In this document: piece after piece, positions 5,659 through 39,440 of the stretch
Position numbering within the stretch: the first letter of the stretch is position 1
How the letters are laid out: each line of letters starts with the position of its first letter
NCBI GenBank assembly: GCA_009103225.1
Contig: RHPI01003369.1
Location: forward strand, 208,911-272,910
DNA length: 64,000 bases
Direction: 5' to 3'
Origin: Chlorokybus atmophyticus
Lineage: Eukaryota > Plantae > Mesostigma and Chlorokybus algae
Notes under the pieces: model-generated
The model's database searches: none
What the model saw: only the letters and a program-made list of their open reading frames with translations
Told to the model about the DNA's origin: nothing
Position numbers and translations under genes: made by a program

Positions 5659-8935
<3,277 letters not shown>

Positions 8936-16837: not shown

Positions 16838-18207
16838 TCACCAGTCAGGGCTCTCAGGTGCACGTGAAGGCGTGCTGCGCTTGCGCTTATGCGCGGGTGA
16901 CCTCAAGCTCCACGGGTCATACGTGACGCCACTCTTGGCTGAGTTGGGTGGAGACACGGGGCAACACGCATCGGATGAAAGTGCCGGAGATGCGGGATGA
17001 TTTGGGATGGAAAGAGGGCTGATAGGTGGTCTTTGTCTCTTGGAGTACAGGGTGTTGGACTTGTAGTTGTTGTGTCGTGCGAAGTTGGGTGTGCTCCGCC
17101 TGTGTCGGGGCGGACGCGGGTGTTGCTGCCACATGGAGCCCTCGTCCTCATCATCTTCAATGTTGTTGTCGTGCGAGTGGCTCCCGCACTCCTCATCGCG
17201 GCTCACGCTGGACTCGCAAAGACTCGGGACCTCGCCGTCGTGTTGATCATCCTTTGCGGTGGGTGCCAGGGACACATGCTGCTCATCGTAGCTGGGACAC
17301 GCAGCCATGTGGGTAATCTTGCACCCTATCGAACAGTACTTGAAGTTGTCTTGCAGCGACCGGTCGCACACCACGCAAGATGACTGGAACGCCTTGCTTG
17401 TTGTGGGCACCTGTGGGTTTACACACATGTCAGCAACACAACATGTGTACTTCAAACCAACATTGGATGCAAGGTTGAGGTTCCCACAGCTCAAGTGCAC
17501 CAGCAAGGGTCCCAGATTGGGCCCAAGAGCTCAAATGGGACCCAATGCCAACATGAACAACATGTGCGAAATGTTTACTCCTCACACATACGGACCTGAG
17601 CGTGAGGGCGGGCGCGCAGGAAGATGATGCGGGCGGAGTTGATAACATAAGTCTGGATGCTAGACAGGTCCAGCTGGTGCTGGATGTCCAACAGCCGCAC
17701 CGCGTCGTGGTAGCTGGACTTGCGCACCTGAATCACCTTGTGTCCCCTGTCAACAGGCCACCATGTTGGTTTGTTGACCCACATACACGCGAGCGCGCGC
17801 ACACACACACACACACAATGTTGGTATGATGACTTGTAGCTCAGAGTCCAGGTCAAGCATTGCCACTTAAGAAGCATTGGAAGGCTTGCATGAGATGACA
17901 AGAGTTCAGCAGGTTAAAGGGAGAAACGTGAAGGTACACATTGCAAGGAGCTGTACCTGTGTGCTGAGAGGCATAGTGGGCATAGTGCAGCGTCCGGGCA
18001 TTGCATGCAGAAGAAGTTCCGCTCGCCCTTGACGCCTCCTCCGGCGGCTGCCACGTGTTCAGGGCAGGGCACAAAGAACGTCCCGCCTATCAGGCCGGCC
18101 AGCCACGCCGGCTCCAAACCCATCCCAGCCATCACCTTCTTCGTCAACGCCACCTGCATGATGCCGCTCACAGCGCCGCCTGCTTCTGTAGAGTCTCTCT
18201 TGCCCAT
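16838..18207 (-). CDS. PLATZ: PLATZ zinc-dependent DNA-binding transcription factor
   Basis: Exons 17957-18207, 17596-17746 and 16838-17410. Motifs: PAWL...FFVPCPEH, ERNFFCMQC...CPLCLSAHRGHKVIQVRKSSYHDAVR, IQTYVINSARIIFLRARP, CVVCDRSLQDNFKYCSIGCK and the C-terminal HKRKRSTPSRAP. Confidence 0.92.
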
Positions 18208-24039: not shown

Positions 24040-25464
24040 ATGAATGGCTTGAAGTTCACAATTGAACCACTCGACGTTGACAACTACAACATATGGAGCG
24101 TGAAGATGGAGCTACTACTGGCCCACAAGGAGGTGTGGAAGTATGTGAATCCGGCGGAGGCAGTCCCTGTAGGCGAAGCGAGAGTCCGGGCAACACAATG
24201 GAGAAAAGCTTTATCTTTGATAGGCTTGCACATGGCTGATCATCACCAGGTGCTGGTGAAGGAGTGCACGAGTGCACAGGAGCTTTGGATGAAGTTGAAT
24301 AGCCACTTCAAGTCGCGCAACATGGCGAGGAGACTGCAGCTGAGGCAGGAGCTCAACTCATTGCGCAAGGAGAGCGGGGAGCCCATTGTTAAGTTCATGG
24401 CGCGAGCAAAGGCGTTGTGGAGGGACTTGCTGGGTGTTGGCCACGAGCTCAAGGAAGTTGAGGTGGTGTGGGCTGTGCTCTCAGGTTTGCCCAAAGAGTA
24501 CAGGGTTGTTGTCACTATCTTGGAGTCTGGGAAGGAAAACTTGTCAATGGATGGGGTGACACCAATGCTTCTTCAAGAAGAGCAGCGCTTGTAGAAGGAG
24601 GACGATGATGGAGAGGGAGCACCTGGAGGTGCTATGGCATTCACGTCATCAACGAAGCATTATGTGAGGAAGGGCGTTCGAGGCATCAACGTGGAGTGTT
24701 GGCACTGCGGGGAGCGTGGTCACATAAAGATGAAGTGTCCCAAGTTGAAGAAGGCTGATGGTGAGCATCGAGCGGTTGCTTTCCATGCATTGGATGAGGG
24801 AGCGGAGTATCCTGGGTGGGTGCTGGACACGGGAGCGAACAGGCATCTCACAAGCGATAGGAGCAAGCTTGCCAACCTCACTCCTTTGACTGAGCCAGTT
24901 ACGGCGGATTTTGGGAACCGGCAGATGCTGGAAGCTGTTGCAAAGGGAGATGCCAATCTAAGGTGCAAGGTTGGTTGTATGGTGAAGGAGGTTGTGCTTA
25001 GGGATCAACTGTATGTGCCAGGTGCATGTGCTAATTTGTTCTCAGTACGTAGAGCCACGATAGTTGGTGCAAGGGCTATGTTTGATGCGGACAAGGCTCG
25101 TATAGAGCTTGGCGGTGTCACGCATGTAGTAGGCATCAACAGGAGTGGACTCTACTATATGGAGGAGGACGGTGCGCACAAGGTTGTTGCAAAGACAAGG
25201 GTGGTCGAGAAGACAGCGTTTAAGACACCACAAGGTCATGGCAACAAGGAGGAGGCACAAAAGGTTGCTGTCACAAGGAGCTCGGAGACCGTGGGAGCTG
25301 CAAAGAGCTACAAGGAAGCGCTGGCGAGCAAGGTGCAGCAAGTAAAGGTTAGCAAGGAGCATGTGCATCAAGAGCATCACAGAGACAAGGGCAAGAAGTT
25401 GAAGGCCAACCAAGGGGCCCAAGTTGCTGTGAAGGACAAGGTGTTCTCTATAAATAAATTTTAA
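24040..25464 (+). pseudogene. Copia gag-CCHC-protease ORF with one in-frame stop (TAG 24592-24594); no integrase, RT or RNase H
   Basis: NYNIWSVKMELLL, LWMKLNSHF...RRLQLRQELNSLRKESGEPI, VLSGLPKEYRVVVTILES (UBN2-type gag), CWHCGERGHIKMKCP, WVLDTGANRHL (protease), LYVPGACANLFSV and GLYYM. The same frame continues across the stop. Confidence 0.9.
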
Positions 25465-31510: not shown

Positions 31511-34121
31511 ATGGAGGAGGTGGCTGTCAACAATCGCAATGACCGGCTTCGCGATTTGGTTGACAAGATGACGGGAACTAACCTGGACAATCTAGAGGAA
31601 ATCGAGCGCCCAGATGCGCCTGCCAGTGATGGAGAATCTGACCACCACACGCATCATCATAAGCGGAAACATGATAAGCATCCTGATGACGCCGCACGCC
31701 AGAAAGAGATCGCCAGACAAAGCATTCACAGGTAATGCAGCAGTTATGCTATGCCAGTTAGTATAATAGCCTTTTCATGGATTGGTGTGAAGCTTACGAT
31801 GCTGCGACCAGATGGCGGGAGCAAATGCGCTTTGAGCGTGGCTACCATCCAGAGAGCAAGCGTCTGGTACAGTTTGAGGGCATCGACAACTTTCGCGATT
31901 TCAGTGGTACGTTACCACCCTACTACAAGCATATTGTTGCATATTGAAGCCGTGCGTCTGTAGGTGGTGCTTGATCTGCATTGCTTACTTCAATCTGCAG
32001 GTGCATTGAAGGGCAAAATTGCCCCTGGGAAGCTCTTTCGTTCAGGGAACCCTGGAGGTGCAACAGATGCTGACATCCAGCGCCTGATGTACGATTTTCG
32101 CATTATGGAACTGGTAGGTAAAATGCTGTCAGTGTTACCATGTTAATCAGACTGAGTTTCTGTGGGTAATGTGGAGGCAACGTACGGCCATACTGCTGTG
32201 ATGCGTGTCAACAAAGACTGTGACTGCATTAGTGTTCCCTTCTGGTTGAGCAGCTGGACTTGCGCAATCCTGAGGAGATCAAGGATGACGCTAAGTTCGT
32301 CAGCGGTGAATTATTCAAGTACTTCCATCTCATGGTAAGCTGAGGGCATTCAGAGCCAGAGCCTGACTACATGTGCAAATATTCAGAAGTTGCATCCCAA
32401 AGGTGAGGTAGTGTAACAAATGGTGCTTTGGTAGGTGTTCTCTAAGGACCGCTTTGGTTCTGAAGGCATACATCCGGACCTTAAACTTGAAGACATTTAT
32501 AAGCCTATGCATGAGCCGTTCTACCGCTTTGGCAGGTACCGCCGCATCATCATTATCAGGTAGTACCCAGGTAGAACTGGATGCATGTTACACAGCCAGG
32601 CACAGTCAGGCAGCACTTGTGGATGCACACCGTGTTATAGGCTCAGCTATGATGTCCATGTTTGACGCATAAACTTGTGTAGCAACTGACTGGCCCGAGA
32701 CGCATGACACCCTTTTGTGTCTTGATTTGCTGCTGGCAAACAATAGTGAGCACCTTTTGCGTGTGGTTTGTTGCATCACAGGCGACGCAAGCAGCGACGC
32801 TCGTTTGAAGAGCAGGAAGTTCAGCTGAACCTGCCAGAGCCTGTTCGGCGAGTTGTAAGCGTGACTGACATCAATGACAGTGGGTATGGCACTGATGACT
32901 CTATCAACAGCGCGGTACGTCATGGCGTTGCCGTAATTGTTTTTATAACTGTCATCTACTTGTGAATGTCTACAACTCATGTACAGCATTACAGCGGTGG
33001 TGAACATTGCAACTGTTTGCACACACAGGTGGAGCGTCTTCCCCCGCCACAAAACCCATACCGCAAGGATGGGGCGCGCATTCGGCATGCAGTGTCCATG
33101 TTGGACAAGGCCAAGTACACGCAGGGCATGATGAAGCGCCTGAGCGTCCGCAAGCTGGCACTGTCAGGACTCTACTATCTGTACTCGGAACAGAAGGCCA
33201 AGTCAGTGGTGCTGGAAGAGGTATGAGTGCAATGGTTTAGATAGCGCTTGCTTGTGCTTCATGGCCATGGTCATGTTCGTAACTGTGTGCAATATTCATT
33301 CTGTTTTACGATTGAACATGCGGCAACTTTCTGCGTTCCCTAGCTATGATGCATGTGACAGGGCAGATTTGATGCTGGATTTCTACCTATCCTCTGAGCA
33401 GCAATTGAGTTGTGCTTTGGTATGGTTGGGCTTCAGGTGAACAAGGGTGGGCTCACGCTGCTCAATGAGCTCATTGTTGACACAGCAAAGACGGAGGTTT
33501 GCGCGGCGCTGCGTGTTGTGTGCTCCGCACTGGAGAGAAACAATCCGCTACTGCTCTACTGCAAAGCTGGCAAAGACCGGACAGGTAATAGCACTGCATC
33601 ACCAAGTGTCTAAATAGCACTTCAAACGCATATGTGGTGCTGGTTGTGGGCTTACATGTGGGGGACACATGCAGGATTCACCTCCATGCTCATCTTGTCC
33701 ATACTGGGCGCAAGCGATGAAGAGATTCTCGCGGACTACACCCTGAGCAATGAGAGCGAGGCGGCTTGGAAAACGGACCACACTGGAGGTGGTCCCAAGG
33801 TTGAGGGCCTGGACATGGCCGGCTTCACCGGTGCACCTCCACAGGTAACAGAGAGAAAGGACATGGCAATCTTGTTGCATGTATGTGCGCTGGCACAAGT
33901 GGTGTGCATGTGCGCGAGCATGTGCATGTGCGTGTGTGGTTGTGCACCGCATGTCACATGCAGTGCGCATACTGAACAGTTTTGTTGGCTTGCCCCAGGT
34001 CATGCAAAATACCCTGCAGTATATGCGGAAACAGTACGGCTCGGTTATGGGCTACCTTGATGCGATTGGGTTCAACTCGTCATGGCGAGAGCGACTGCGC
34101 AAGAATCTGCTTAAAAGTTAG
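31511..34121 (+). CDS. Protein tyrosine/serine phosphatase-like (IphP / Y_phosphatase3 type)
   Basis: Spliced motifs FEGIDNFRDFSG, GKLFRSG, LDLRNPEEI, LLLYCKAGKDRTG (CX5R), LGASDEEILADYTLS and YGSVMGYLDAIGF; stop at 34119-34121. One internal junction is uncertain. Confidence 0.88.
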
Positions 34122-34541
34122 CTAATCAGTCGCATGGCTACATTTACCAGGTTAGTAAGTAGCAGCTACAGCTATAGTTGCTAACCTATTGCTTTGAACA
34201 CGCGCCTGTGTCAGTGACCATCCCTCATCACCAAAGAATGGTTGCTGTTTCCTCCTTTTGTGACTAGCACATCATGCTCAGGATTACAACCACACTGCCC
34301 TGCCGCTTGGATATGGCATATCATATGTTGTTATGTGTAAGCGTGTCAACACGCATGGATATATGTGGTGATGACGCAAGAACAATGAAGAGAGTATACG
34401 TGAGAGTACAGGCATTGGACTTGGTGCAGGGCGCTGCGACTGGTGTGTCATTGGTTTTAACACCGGTTACACTCATCAATAGTGGATGTGCACACTGCAT
34501 ATCAACTATAGTGTGGCACAACACGCCAGCTGTTGTTTAGG

Positions 34542-36076
34542 CTACAGCACCAAGTTTGCAAGAATGGTGCAAACTAGAACCGTCACTATGGAAGCAGGAA
34601 CCATGTGCCCGTCGTTGAACTTGAACTGAGCCTGCCATTCGTAATTTGGCTTGGGTCCTGTTGTGTTACCTTGTGCCTGCAAGAGATTGTGCATTCGCTG
34701 TGTGTTGGTCCACATATGTACAACATTGCCAAAGCGCATCAAACAGAAAAATGTTTGTTTCAAAAGCAGAGAGACAGATACGCCTAAACTTGCGAACCGA
34801 GTATATGGGGATGAATGCCAATGCCATGCAAGCAGCACGTGCAACATGACGCATGTTTTCCCCGTGTGTTGTGCTAAAAGTAGAAGAAGATCAGCTGCGT
34901 ACCTGAGGCTCTATACCCCAAACAAGAGTGCCGTCGTACTTGACTAGGATCTTTGGGTTGAGGGTGTAGTCTGCCGCAGACAATGCAAGGGAATACCTGC
35001 ACAGGTTGTCAGCCCACATCACATCCCATGATGCTTGCTGTGACATGCTCACTCACTCGCGGTTGTCGCCACCGATCAAGCCGTACTGCGCGTCATTTGC
35101 TGTCCTGAGAGCACACAAGGCAGTGTTTGCAACTGCATACTCTGCCAAGTAGTAAAAACATGAGGTACAATACGCTTACACCATACGTTTTGATGATGAA
35201 GCCTGAGATGGCACCCGCCTCGGTGCTTTTGTTCGAATTGAGCTGGCTTGTGAGACTCAGACCGTAGGGGCTGGACACCTGTATGATGCATACAACTGCG
35301 GCGCCATTCGCACCTGCTCGCAGCTTACTTGATGACGTCTCTGATAATGCGGGAACGATGCAAAATCGCATATTCAAGACTTGCCTGTTACACCGATTGC
35401 GAAGTTGACTGTTGTTGGAATGCCCCTTCCCGTGCCATCGTAAGTGAAGCTGTACACCCCACAACCTCCTCGTCAGCATTGGAACGATGGTTATGACATT
35501 GTATGTGGTTGAAACTGCCCAACACACCTGTAGTCCTGCGGCCTTGCGTCACTGCCCCAAGGCCCTCCACTGCCCTGATTCACATTGCCTTGGAATAACA
35601 CCTTGTGCGTGTTTGCGTACAAAACATAGTAGCACTGACAAACCACTATGAGTAGTCATCAGCATGCACAACAGCAACAACAAAGAACACCTCAAAGAAG
35701 TAGCTGAAGGTGAACAAGGTGTAGTCAACAGCGGGCCCAAGGTTGGACAGCACTAGGTCCACGCCGACCGTGTTGGAGCCTTGTGCAGGGACATGCTGCC
35801 TCGAGAGCACTTGTACCTGTCATTGGAAGTGGCTCTGTGACTGACGCATTGACACTGTTGCACCGCCACACACAGCTGCTTCAACAGAATGGCATTACCT
35901 TCACATCTGAGGCTGAAAGTGTGGTATCACTCTGAGCGCCTGATTTCTGCGTGCCAAATCCACACAGCGCAATGACAGCAGTGACCATAAGCGTGCAGAG
36001 GCATCAAGCGCAATGACAAACAGCACTCTTAACTTACCTGAAGGCACAGCACTGCCACCATCAACCACACATGCAT
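34542..36076 (-). CDS. Secreted, membrane-anchored CBM3-like (family 3 cellulose-binding module) protein, 242 aa, 9 exons
   Basis: Exons 36038-36076, 35899-35946, 35691-35816, 35528-35574, 35385-35449, 35187-35313, 35057-35104, 34903-34996 and 34542-34676 total 729 nt with all phases compatible (one GC-AG intron). Signal peptide MHVWLMVAVLCLQKSGA; CBM3-like DVKVQ..SNTV..SNLGPAVDYTLFTFSYFF ... NREYSL..NPKILVKYDGTLVWGIEP; hydrophobic tail MVPASIVTVLVCTILANLVL*. Confidence 0.8.
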
Positions 36077-36601
36077 TCTGCAAGGCATACTTGTTCCTGA
36101 ACCTCCACGTGAGTCTGGCCTGGTGGCAGCCTAACCAAAGTCTGGCTTCCGCCCTGGCCTCCACTGGTAGGTAACCCGGTGGCTGCCACTGTGGTGGCCA
36201 CTGCAAGCAACAGGTTGTGCCACAGATCTCTTAGCGTCATGCCTTTCTTGAAGTCTTTCTTGCAGGGCATGCACTGTCACGAGCAGGGACAATGCAAGCG
36301 CAGGCACTATCTACAGGCAACGTGTTCAATTTGTTGGTTCCGAGGATGCCCCCATTGTACAAAAAATGCAATGAGGTGTTGGTGACATGCACGAACATGC
36401 GACTGATGTGACAGATCGCACTCCAATGGGTGTAAGTCATATCAGTGCTTGGAGCTTGCTGTATGTAAGCAAACTTTGGGTTATGTTGCCACTGCACTAC
36501 CACACGTAGTCACAGTTATGTGCTTTACTGTGCAGAGTATTCACCACAGACTACAAAGCCTGTCTCGGAATAACTATGAGAAGATTCTATGTCCTGTGTA
36601 G

Positions 36602-39440
36602 TTACTGTGGGCCAGTGTCTTCTGGCGCAGGTATGGTCACCTGAGAAACCACTCCGTCAGAAGACAAACATCCGACACAAAAACCTGTTGTTAGCATATT
36701 TTGTGCAAAACACAACGGGGTGTAAATGCTCATTTCCAGCACAGTAATGCTCAGATGCTGTATGAAGTGCCAGGCATTTCAGGAGCACCAACCAACCAAC
36801 ACCACGCACGTACCCCTGCATTGGCAGCCATAGCGCGCATAATCATAAGCGCCGCATTGCGCTCCCTCGCATTATCGCACACGAGCATGAGCACGACCGA
36901 CGGCTTCAGCGCGAGGAACATGCCTTGCGCGGCAGCATCACCGCCACCTCGCGCTCCGCATACCTAAAGAGCAGCAGGAGCATCACTTGAGAACTGTTGC
37001 AGCATTGCATTGGTGGCTTACAACATCCAAACTGTTTAGTACAGCATACCAACATGGAGCTGCTGTACGCCTCTTTGTACTTGGTGCTCTTGCCCTTTTT
37101 AATCTTGATTTTGCCTGGTTCCAGGCAAAGCATGTAACGGTCTCTCGTGTTGTACGCCTCGCTGTTCAGTCGCACAATGATGACCTGTGTCCAATAATGG
37201 CAGCATTGAATAACTTGCACACAACAATGTGTGTCCAAAGGTGCAAAAGGTCAACACATGCACCTGGAAGCTAGCTGACCCTTGCGTCAACATGCTGTGC
37301 ACGTCCTCTTGCAAGCCAGGGACTGCACAACAAGTCAGCAACATGAGCTATGCACCGTCACCGCAACATTGTTTGTCAACATGCAACAGCAGCAACCCAC
37401 TTGAGGCTATTGGAAGTGATGTAGTCGCCTGAAACTCTTGACCGAAAGGGGATTGCATCCTGCAGCTTACAATGTAGCCGAGGTCCAGCGGTTCTGGTGC
37501 ATAAACGGGTCGCATTGCACCTGCGCAACATGAGGTTGATACAGCAAAGGCCAAGATGGATACATGCTCAACGGCATTTGCGTTTCACCACTGCATGCCT
37601 CACCTGCAATAATATGTGCTGACCCATCCCCGGCCAGCCGGTACCACTGGAATTGCCAGTTGTCAATGGGGGTCTTGCCAGCATTTACTTCCAGCACACC
37701 ACCAAGCGTAGGTTCTCCCCGCAACATAACATCACCAGGCACTTCCTTGATCGGCTCCATAGACTGGTACTTTGCAAGCTGCATACAGTAAACATGAAGT
37801 TGCGCATCACTTAGCAAGAGGTAATAGTATGTACACATGACCAACGTATCTGATGGATACACGACGGCCACATACCTGCTGCCTCAAAGCAGCATTCTCT
37901 TCGTTACAAGTCTGTAATGCATGGCGCAGACCGCTGAGCTCTAACTCCACTTCCACTGGCAGTGAATGAAACACAGTTGCGCCTGCACCCGCGCTTGCAG
38001 CCTAGGGCCAGTCAGAACAAAACAGTTGCAGTTGTGTTGTGGTGCGTCGCGCTGCATTGTGTTCAAAGCGTTACGAGCTGCATAGCATCGCTTGCACGGT
38101 ACTGAAACTAAAAGATACAGCTACATGCGAACGACGTGTTTGCAAGTTTATCCCTTACCACGGCGGCGGGGCTTTCGAGCATGCGTTGATGAAGTTCCGT
38201 ATCAGCCTGAACCATCTCCTCCCTGAGCTCTGCCGCCTCCTGTTCCGCTAAGGCCAGCTCGTTGCCACATTCTTTGGCGGCCTGGAATCACGTTAACCCT
38301 TAAAACACTGCGAGCAACATCCCAGCTATAGCTTGCCAGTATATCAATACGTAGAAGTATGTTCCTCGCTAACACATAAAACTAGGTGTTGCTGTACAAG
38401 CATATACATGTACCTGTACAAAAGTCTGGCCCATCTGGCGAAGGTTGTCTTGCTCATCCTGCATCTGCTTCTCTTGCATTTTCCACTGGTTCTCCAGCGC
38501 TTCCAGCTGCATGGGTTAAATATGTTGATAGGTTGATGAACACTGCTGTTGCTGGCGACAGTTGCAATGAGAAGTTCAGTCGCATACCATAACGACAAGC
38601 TCCTCCACTTGGTCCCGAGTGCGACCAAAACTGCGATTTTTCAGATCCGCCAGCTGCGCACTTATCGCCGATATCAAACCCTGCCCACTCTCTTTACCTT
38701 TTCCATTTTGCGCCTGGCAAATGCAAGCAAATTAGCTTTGCTCAGAATCGCACACAAAGCAACTTTGTTGCAGTGGGTTCGCTTGAACTTGGTCTGTCGG
38801 AAGGAAGCATGAGGCAAACAACAACAAAGCCACTGCATGTTACCTTTTCAGGTGTGCATTCAAAGTTGGCAAGCCCATCTTCCCACCGCTTTGCCATTGC
38901 CTGAAAGTGGACAGATTGTGCACTCAAAGTCCGCAACATCTTGAGGTGAATTTGCAAGCAACCTTTCCCTTGTCTACGCTTTCTGCCTTTTCAACAAGTG
39001 ACGTGACTTGGGCGTGAAGTACAGCTGCAACAACAGCTTGCTGCAGGCTTCAAGCCGCTTATGCAACACGCAACTCGTGCTGTCACGCGCTTACCCAATA
39101 CAATGCCTGTGCGCAAAAGCGAATAGCAAGCCAAGCCGCGGCATGCAAAAATCCTCAGACGGACTCTACTGACAAGACAGGCAGCGGAGCCAATAACTGA
39201 TGGCGGATGCTCCTGTGCATGCAAGGATTACTTGTCTTCTATTTCGCACAACAGTACAATGCAAAAGACTCGCACCTGTACGTTGAGGCGGCGCTGTTGA
39301 ATGACTACAGTGGCCTGGTCGACATGCTCGCCGGCAATAGCGAGCCTGCCGTCAGGGCTACGTCCAACCCTATCAAAAGACCACCTCAGCGACCTCGGCG
39401 GCGTCATCGTCGTGGAAGATGGCTCCATCATTCCTGGCAT
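36602..39440 (-). CDS. SCAB: SCAB-family actin-binding/bundling protein (coiled coil, Ig-like, PH); 5' end uncertain (38.9-39.44 kb)
   Basis: Exons give AMAKRWEDGL, LADLKNRSFGRTRDQVEELVVM, VELELSGLRHAL, LRGEPTLGGVL..FQWYRLAGDGSAHIIAGAMRPVYAPEPLDLG, KIKIKKGKSTKYKEAYSSSMLVCGARGGGDAAAQGMF and RERNAALMIMR. These are colinear with recalled plant SCAB1. Last exon 36602-36640. Confidence 0.88.

Follow-up and report, generated by a model that had tools for sequence, protein, structure and literature searches.

What does a short gene of many exons in the alga Chlorokybus atmophyticus encode, and does it carry a cellulose-binding module of bacterial type to the surface of an algal cell? The gene is read from the minus strand of a 64,000-nucleotide stretch of contig RHPI01003369.1 (assembly GCA_009103225.1, positions 208,911 to 272,910 of the forward strand), which is called the window here and from which all coordinates are taken. 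An earlier note, made from the sequence alone, had proposed that the gene encodes a stand-alone module of carbohydrate-binding module family 3 (CBM3), held at the membrane by a glycosylphosphatidylinositol (GPI) or transmembrane tail. We establish the gene model, the splicing of three of its introns, its expression, its absence from the searched annotation and the similarity of its product to CBM3 at the level of sequence profiles. From these we infer a fold, a GPI anchor, a ligand and a role at the wall. The complete chain, from an expressed and unannotated gene to a secreted, GPI-tethered, non-catalytic CBM3-type glycan binder at the interface of membrane and wall, is the reading that we favour, with somewhat better than even confidence.

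Gene structure

An exhaustive search for spliced paths over all GT/GC..AG introns, begun at the minus-strand ATG at 36076, gave the exon structure. The earlier note had described nine exons that join in phase to give a protein of 242 amino acids, and a single GT/GC..AG path, running from 36076 to 34542, reproduces exactly that protein. There are eight introns of 60-226 nt, of which seven are GT-AG and one is GC-AG. The seven GT donors (gtaagt, gtaatg, gtgttc, gtgtgt, gtatgg, gtgagt and gtacgc) are near consensus, the donor of intron 5 has the consensus GC form (CAG/gcaagt), and all eight acceptors end in cag. The GC content at third codon positions of the spliced coding sequence is 0.63, whereas the GC content of the introns is 0.42-0.53. 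The note had also stated that the gene is hidden from single open reading frames (ORFs). The ORF list bears this out, since the gene is covered by no single ORF. Around exons, stop-free stretches extend at most to 144 amino acids for exon 6 and 101 amino acids for exon 9, and both consist mostly of intron read-through.

An in-frame ATG at 36088, twelve nucleotides (four codons) upstream of 36076, precedes every other ATG in the frame, and an in-frame stop lies further upstream. Starting at 36088 adds Met-Pro-Cys-Arg and brings an Arg into the n-region of the signal peptide. This is probably the true start, in which case the protein has 246 rather than 242 residues.

Exon 1 (36038..36088, or 36076-36038 from the ATG at 36076) holds the start codon and the n- and h-regions of the predicted signal peptide, and ends at the donor CAG/gtaagt. 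Exon 2 (35899..35946), bounded by cag and AAG/gtaatg, encodes what hydropathy suggests to be the end of the signal peptide and the mature N-terminus. The predicted CBM3-like module begins with exon 3 (35691..35816), which would supply its N-terminal strands and includes the conserved Asn54, Gly56 and Tyr68. It continues in exon 4 (35528..35574), where a conserved Gly just past the junction of exons 3 and 4 aligns with the profile. The middle of the module falls in exon 5 (35385..35449), which is directly followed by the GC-AG intron, and in exon 6 (35187..35313), which has no detectable similarity to CBM3. Exon 7 (35057..35104) aligns with the CBM3 segment that contains Arg112 and Trp118 of CipA, the scaffoldin of Acetivibrio/Clostridium thermocellum; the residues found here are Thr152 and Tyr158. 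The last strands of the module and the C-terminal signature G-x-L-V-W-G-x-E-P are in exon 8 (34903..34996). Exon 9 (34542..34676) encodes a linker of about 20 residues, a tail resembling a GPI signal (34545-34616) and the stop codon. We regard this nine-exon gene as almost certainly real.

Expression and absence from annotation

One public RNA-type run contains the locus. It is small, at 44 million letters, and its contigs were aligned to 34300-36400. A contig of 203 nt joins 35227-35186, 35103-35055, 34994-34902 and 34675-34657. Its gaps are introns 6, 7 and 8 exactly, within the 1-2 nt by which the cuts are ambiguous, and the ends of these introns read CT..AC on the plus strand, which is GT..AG on the minus strand. 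The 3' junction of exon 6, both junctions of exon 7 and those of exon 8 are confirmed in this way. A second contig, of 154 nt, spans 34477-34630 and so contains the last codons, the stop codon and 65 nt or more of the 3' untranslated region (34477..34541, a minimum extent); RNA contigs thus cover exon 9. The gene is expressed.

The searched protein collection contains the annotated proteome of Chlorokybus (JGI Chlat1), since a PLATZ-type ORF elsewhere in the window (16841-17506, minus strand) is 100% identical to the 324-residue protein jgi/Chlat1/5833/Chrsp4S06226 in eukprot. A phmmer search with exon 3 against 1.84 billion representatives of any length found no protein that contains this exon. 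An identical stretch of 42 amino acids would score far above threshold. For exon 6, scored within its stop-free stretch of 144 amino acids, no candidate of 79-252 amino acids was found among 5.8 billion clusters. The gene is absent from the JGI Chlat1 annotation in the searched collection, or is drawn there without exons 3 and 6.

The same searches were examined for relatives. With exon 3, phmmer gave four matches, of which three are giant adhesins from bacteria and the fourth is a repetitive fish protein. All four repeat a generic strand motif of about 29 residues many times, and they were rejected as relatives. The fish sequences (Archocentrus centrarchus XP_030575032.1 and XP_030575031.1) are very large, uncharacterised and highly repetitive, with repeats that weakly match the exon 3 motif and with Pfam matches that look spurious. 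The stop-free stretch around exon 3 found no relative in metagenomes. The stretch around exon 8 gave a single match there, 47% identical to the final CBM3 strand of an ordinary bacterial protein of the type CBM3-CBM3-GH18. There is no paralogue within the 64-kb window, and no close relative was found in protein or metagenome searches with single exons or exon-bearing stretches.

Predicted targeting

The N-terminus has a hydrophobic core of 10 residues, followed by Ser-Gly-Ala before a likely cleavage site after residue 17. At the C-terminus Asn219-Asp220-Gly221 forms a candidate omega site, with a spacer of His-Met-Val-Pro-Ala-Ser and then 15 hydrophobic residues that run to the end of the protein. 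Small residues, a short polar spacer and a hydrophobic stretch ending at the C-terminus are the standard pattern for GPI attachment. The signal peptide and the GPI-type tail that the earlier note described both fit by inspection, and we consider GPI anchoring probable. There are two N-glycosylation sequons, NKS at 136 (exon 6) and NTT at 202 (in the linker encoded by exon 9). The protein has three Cys in total, two of which lie within the signals predicted to be cleaved. Once mature, the protein would consist of the module and some 20 residues of linker, which would keep it near the membrane.

Similarity to the CBM3 module

To compare the protein with CBM3 over its whole length, local profiles of complete modules were built. 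A degenerate DNA pattern for the C-terminal strand of CBM3 led to 120 bacterial loci, from which 115 modules were excised; three of these were verified as Pfam CBM_3. One profile was made from 83 non-redundant modules and a broader one from 93 modules, the latter taken from every CBM3 in the loci. The query protein was rebuilt from the exon coordinates.

Against the 83-module profile the spliced protein scores 25.0 bits (P 9e-10), with profile positions 9-164 aligned to residues 23-197. Against the 93-module profile it scores 28.6 bits overall (P 8e-11), with 13.8 bits in the N-terminal part and 17.3 bits in the C-terminal part; the P values for these separate matches are about 3e-6 and 2e-7. 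The C-terminal part alone reaches 17.7 bits with the 83-module profile. The first 100 residues score 10-12 bits, and do so even against the 83-module profile from which the C-terminal strand has been removed. In controls the highest scores were 7.7 bits among 1000 shuffles of the N-terminal part, 4.5 bits among 132 segments of real beta-rich adhesins and 6.5 bits among all 532 stop-free stretches of at least 60 amino acids from the window. Alignment with hhalign gave a score of 61 and a probability of 96.4%, and residue shuffles reached a score of 18.9. Pairwise comparison with single bacterial modules gives 13-18 bits, and none is close.

A search of all PDB sequences with exon 8 (31 amino acids) gave three matches at E of 10 or less. 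The top two are both CBM3: 4b9p_A, described as a 'type 3a cellulose-binding domain protein' (E 0.017), and 6d5b_A (E 0.17). In both cases exon 8 aligns to the last 25-30 residues of the module, which form its last strand. The PDB matches of exon 3 are monobodies rather than CBM3, and exon 6 found no match in the PDB. The ESM Atlas scores for exons 3 and 8 do not exceed 0.73 and are uninformative for fragments of this kind.

Several of the residues typical of the family are present. The near-invariant residues Asn54, Gly56, Tyr68 and Tyr168-Ser169 are kept, and of the C-terminal signature, Y-x-x-G-x-L-V-W-G-x-E-P in full, Gly189, Leu191, Val192, Trp193, Gly194, Glu196 and Pro197 are kept. A fair reading is that the C-terminal match is strong and the N-terminal one modest yet significant in its own right; the two are correctly ordered and spaced, and the middle between them cannot be recognised. 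We consider it quite likely that the module is truly homologous to CBM3.

Evidence against and alternative explanations

Several observations weigh against the favoured reading, and they concern its anchor, its module and its 5' exons. The signal peptide and the GPI signal were judged by rule and inspection together with hydropathy and not by a predictor. The protein could have a CBM3-type module and no GPI anchor, either being soluble in the wall or the medium, or crossing the membrane once through its C-terminal stretch with no cytoplasmic tail. Such a protein is compatible with the domain call; the rule-based nature of the GPI call speaks for it, as does the shortness of the hydrophobic tail, whose 15 residues include Asn and Thr. 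Against it, the tail, the polar spacer, the Asn-Asp-Gly and the signal peptide together form the established GPI pattern, and 15 residues are short for a stable transmembrane helix. We judge a protein of this kind unlikely, yet it is the alternative to be taken most seriously.

Most of the remaining points concern the module. The earlier note had claimed that both ends match CBM3. The alignment is indeed colinear over the whole module and both ends score, but the signal is lopsided, with the bulk of it in the last 30 residues or so. When the last strand is removed, hhalign falls to a score of 23.6 and a probability of 12%, and when blocks of 10 residues are shuffled with the C-terminal motif left intact, 40-45 of the 61 points are still attained. 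Residues 72-168 score 0 bits with the 83-module profile, and with both profiles about 100 residues in the middle are unmatched. In Pfam, exons 3, 6, 8 and 9 taken singly give no match even at E 10. The motif in exon 3 is generic enough to match repeated beta-sandwich adhesins. Conservation is unsupported, no homologue being known. The CBM3 reading is supported and unproven, and the nine-stranded beta-sandwich (jelly-roll) of CBM3 is a putative fold for this protein.

As regards Pfam, the model for CBM_3 (PF00942) has 83 positions and covers the N-terminal half of the module only, with a gathering threshold of 22.4 bits. The half that it covers reaches 10-14 bits against the local profiles. Since PF00942 covers just this weaker half, failure to reach 22.4 bits would decide nothing either way.

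Key residues of the family are also replaced. For this comparison a CipA-like module served as the ruler in the profile alignment, and the CipA numbering of strip and calcium residues follows the 1NBC literature. The near-invariant Arg before the Tyr is replaced by Ser67, and a near-invariant Phe is replaced as well. In CBM3a and CBM3b a planar strip of residues stacks on crystalline cellulose, and in the algal protein most residues of the strip are replaced, as apparently are most of those of the calcium site. In an alignment that is tentative, and unreliable in the middle, Asp56, Arg112 and Trp118 of the strip become Thr89, Thr152 and Tyr158, in agreement with the remark of the earlier note that the strip is not obviously retained. 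The strip Asp56-His57-Tyr67-Arg112-Trp118 is not retained as a whole; its aromatic character is partly kept, with Tyr90 beside Thr89 at the aligned positions. The structural calcium site of CipA consists of Thr44, Asp46, Thr122, Asn125 and Asp126. Of its ligands Thr44, Asp46, Asn125 and Asp126 align, again tentatively, with Glu71, Ser73, Arg166 and Glu167, so that acidic side chains are left at two positions of the site, where the alignment is of low confidence.

The gene could be real and yet encode a surface glycoprotein that is rich in beta strands, specific to the lineage and not related to CBM3, with the C-terminal G-x-LVWG-x-EP and the N-terminal 'x-V-x-N-x-G ... Y-F-F' strands present by chance or convergence. 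The concentration of the profile signal in about 30 residues, the unmatched middle, the monobody and adhesin-repeat matches of exon 3 alone, the silence of Pfam on single exons and the replaced family residues all favour this view. It has to account, however, for two segments that match the correct ends of the profile, in order and correctly spaced, with the P values of about 3e-6 and 2e-7 given above. It must also explain why an unbiased PDB search puts two CBM3 modules on top, at the same structural position, and why real beta-rich proteins and the 532 ORFs of the window score no higher than 6.5 bits. We find this explanation improbable.

The RNA contigs confirm introns 6, 7 and 8 of the splice model and do not reach exons 1-5, for which the support is the quality of the splice sites, the continuous frame and the colinear alignment of the domain. 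It is highly improbable that the 5' exons are misdrawn or that a larger gene, such as one for a catalytic domain with a CBM, ends in these nine exons. In favour of this are the lack of RNA coverage in exons 1-5 and a cag just before the ATG at 36076, which could in principle be an acceptor. Against it, the frame follows an in-frame stop and begins with a typical signal peptide, and the nearest upstream coding sequence on this strand encodes the C-terminal PH domain of a SCAB-type protein, the product of a different and cytosolic gene. No ORF recognisable by Pfam lies in between, and the alignment with the CBM3 profile is colinear through exons 2-8.

Proposed function and origin

Under the favoured reading of a GPI-tethered CBM3-type protein, a pre-protein of about 246 residues would be routed into the secretory pathway by a cleavable signal peptide. 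The mature part (approximately residues 18-219) would be almost entirely a single, very divergent CBM3-type module (23-197) together with the glycosylated linker of about 20 residues. The Asn-Asp-Gly, spacer and hydrophobic tail of 15 residues would most likely be exchanged for a GPI anchor, which would fix the module to the outside of the plasma membrane, directly beneath the wall. There it most likely would bind a wall glycan non-catalytically; for wall-glycan binding itself we put our confidence at a little under even. As most of the flat strip of CBM3a is replaced, crystalline cellulose is a less likely ligand than glucan chains that are single or disordered, or than another polymer of the wall.

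The origin of such a protein is a more speculative matter. A bacterial CBM3 may have been captured near the base of the streptophytes, and may have gained eight introns together with secretion and GPI signals to become a stand-alone protein in contact with the wall; we hold this to be possible and rather doubtful. If the module is bacterial, its transfer would be old. The eight introns fit with this, and no donor or eukaryotic relative was found in the searches with single exons or exon-bearing stretches.

Comparison with known systems

The closest proteins by sequence are the bacterial CBM3 modules, of which CipA CBM3a, 4b9p_A and 6d5b_A are examples. The algal module is of similar length (about 175 against about 155-165 amino acids), matches the profile colinearly from the first strand to the last, and shares the Asn, the Tyr, the Tyr-Ser and the terminal G-x-LVWG-x-EP strand. 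It differs in having just 20% identity or so, a middle that is unmatched, a replaced near-invariant Arg, replacements in the strip and, apparently, replacements of most of the calcium ligands. It is also encoded by a eukaryotic gene of nine exons, is attached to no enzyme or scaffoldin and is probably GPI-anchored.

In design the nearest proteins are found among sensors and wall proteins. The RsgI anti-sigma factors of Clostridium thermocellum use an extracellular CBM3 as a polysaccharide sensor (PMC4711584, PMC10328401). The common design is a CBM3 at the outer face of the membrane that contacts polysaccharide instead of targeting an enzyme, the anchoring being a prediction in the alga. RsgI has a transmembrane helix and a cytoplasmic anti-sigma domain, whereas the algal protein has no cytoplasmic residues, and any sensing would therefore need a partner.

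COBRA and COBRA-like proteins of land plants, for instance rice BC1, are GPI-anchored (PMC3749933). With these the algal protein has in common the order of signal peptide, non-catalytic glycan-binding module and GPI signal, as well as the proposed location between membrane and wall, its own parts being predicted. COBRA proteins (PF04833) are about 430-670 residues long and rich in Cys, with a CCVS motif, in contrast to the algal protein, which has 242-246 residues, about half the length, and three Cys. Pfam gives no COBRA match on exons 3, 6, 8 and 9. The match in sequence is with CBM3; the likeness to COBRA is one of architecture and not of family membership, and the algal protein is a member of neither the RsgI nor the COBRA group.

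The literature searched describes no stand-alone CBM3 from an alga or any other eukaryote. In one survey CBM3 appears for bacteria alone (PMC5977491). For Chlorokybus, the genome paper counts 22 proteins with a CBM and, in the text available, does not name CBM3; it also records that Chlorokybus already has CESA/CSLD-like synthases and cellulases (PMC7027972).

Genomic neighbourhood

The upstream neighbour on the same strand is a gene for a SCAB-type actin-binding protein (36909-37871, minus strand). Pfam recognises in it a weak SCAB-Ig match (37470-37871, minus strand) and a SCAB-PH domain (36909-37238, minus strand, 35.6 bits). The 1.4 kb that separate this gene from the ATG contain no Pfam-recognisable ORF. 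The SCAB-PH end of the upstream gene and the in-frame stop before the ATG indicate that the CBM3-like gene is separate. Pfam describes the SCAB family as plant-specific; the gene in the window belongs to one of the earliest-branching streptophyte algae.

On the other side lies a convergent gene on the plus strand, with two exon pieces of a Y_phosphatase3 domain (33632-34121, Pfam 27-28 bits). Its 3' end is near 34121, some 350 nt away from 34477, where the CBM3-like transcript ends as mapped. The genes nearby give no sign of a wall-related cluster.

Three further features of the window can be mentioned. The PLATZ / B-box transcription-factor gene at 16841-17506 (minus strand) is the one identical to JGI model Chlat1 5833 (Chrsp4S06226), which places the window on scaffold Chrsp4. 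At 24634-25464 on the plus strand there is a gag-like ORF of a retroelement, with a zinc knuckle and Pol_BBD. A stretch of some 310 G, with a single N in it (7205-7518), lies inside or beside a cytochrome P450 gene (exon 7586-8200, 100 bits), and looks like an artefact of sequencing or assembly rather than biology.

Implications

This gene shows that short, secreted proteins encoded by many exons are missing from the reference annotation of Chlorokybus. An enzyme-free CBM3-type module tethered by GPI would be a new architecture for CBM3. If the module was indeed captured from bacteria, the protein would represent an independent invention of the COBRA-like design of a GPI-anchored glycan binder, possibly with a changed ligand, and an undescribed class of algal proteins that organise or sense the wall. 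Chlorokybus belongs to the earliest branch of the lineage leading to land plants. For the organisation of the wall at the level of the membrane in early streptophyte algae, the CBM3-like protein is a concrete and testable candidate for a linker between membrane and wall that would predate COBRA-type biology.

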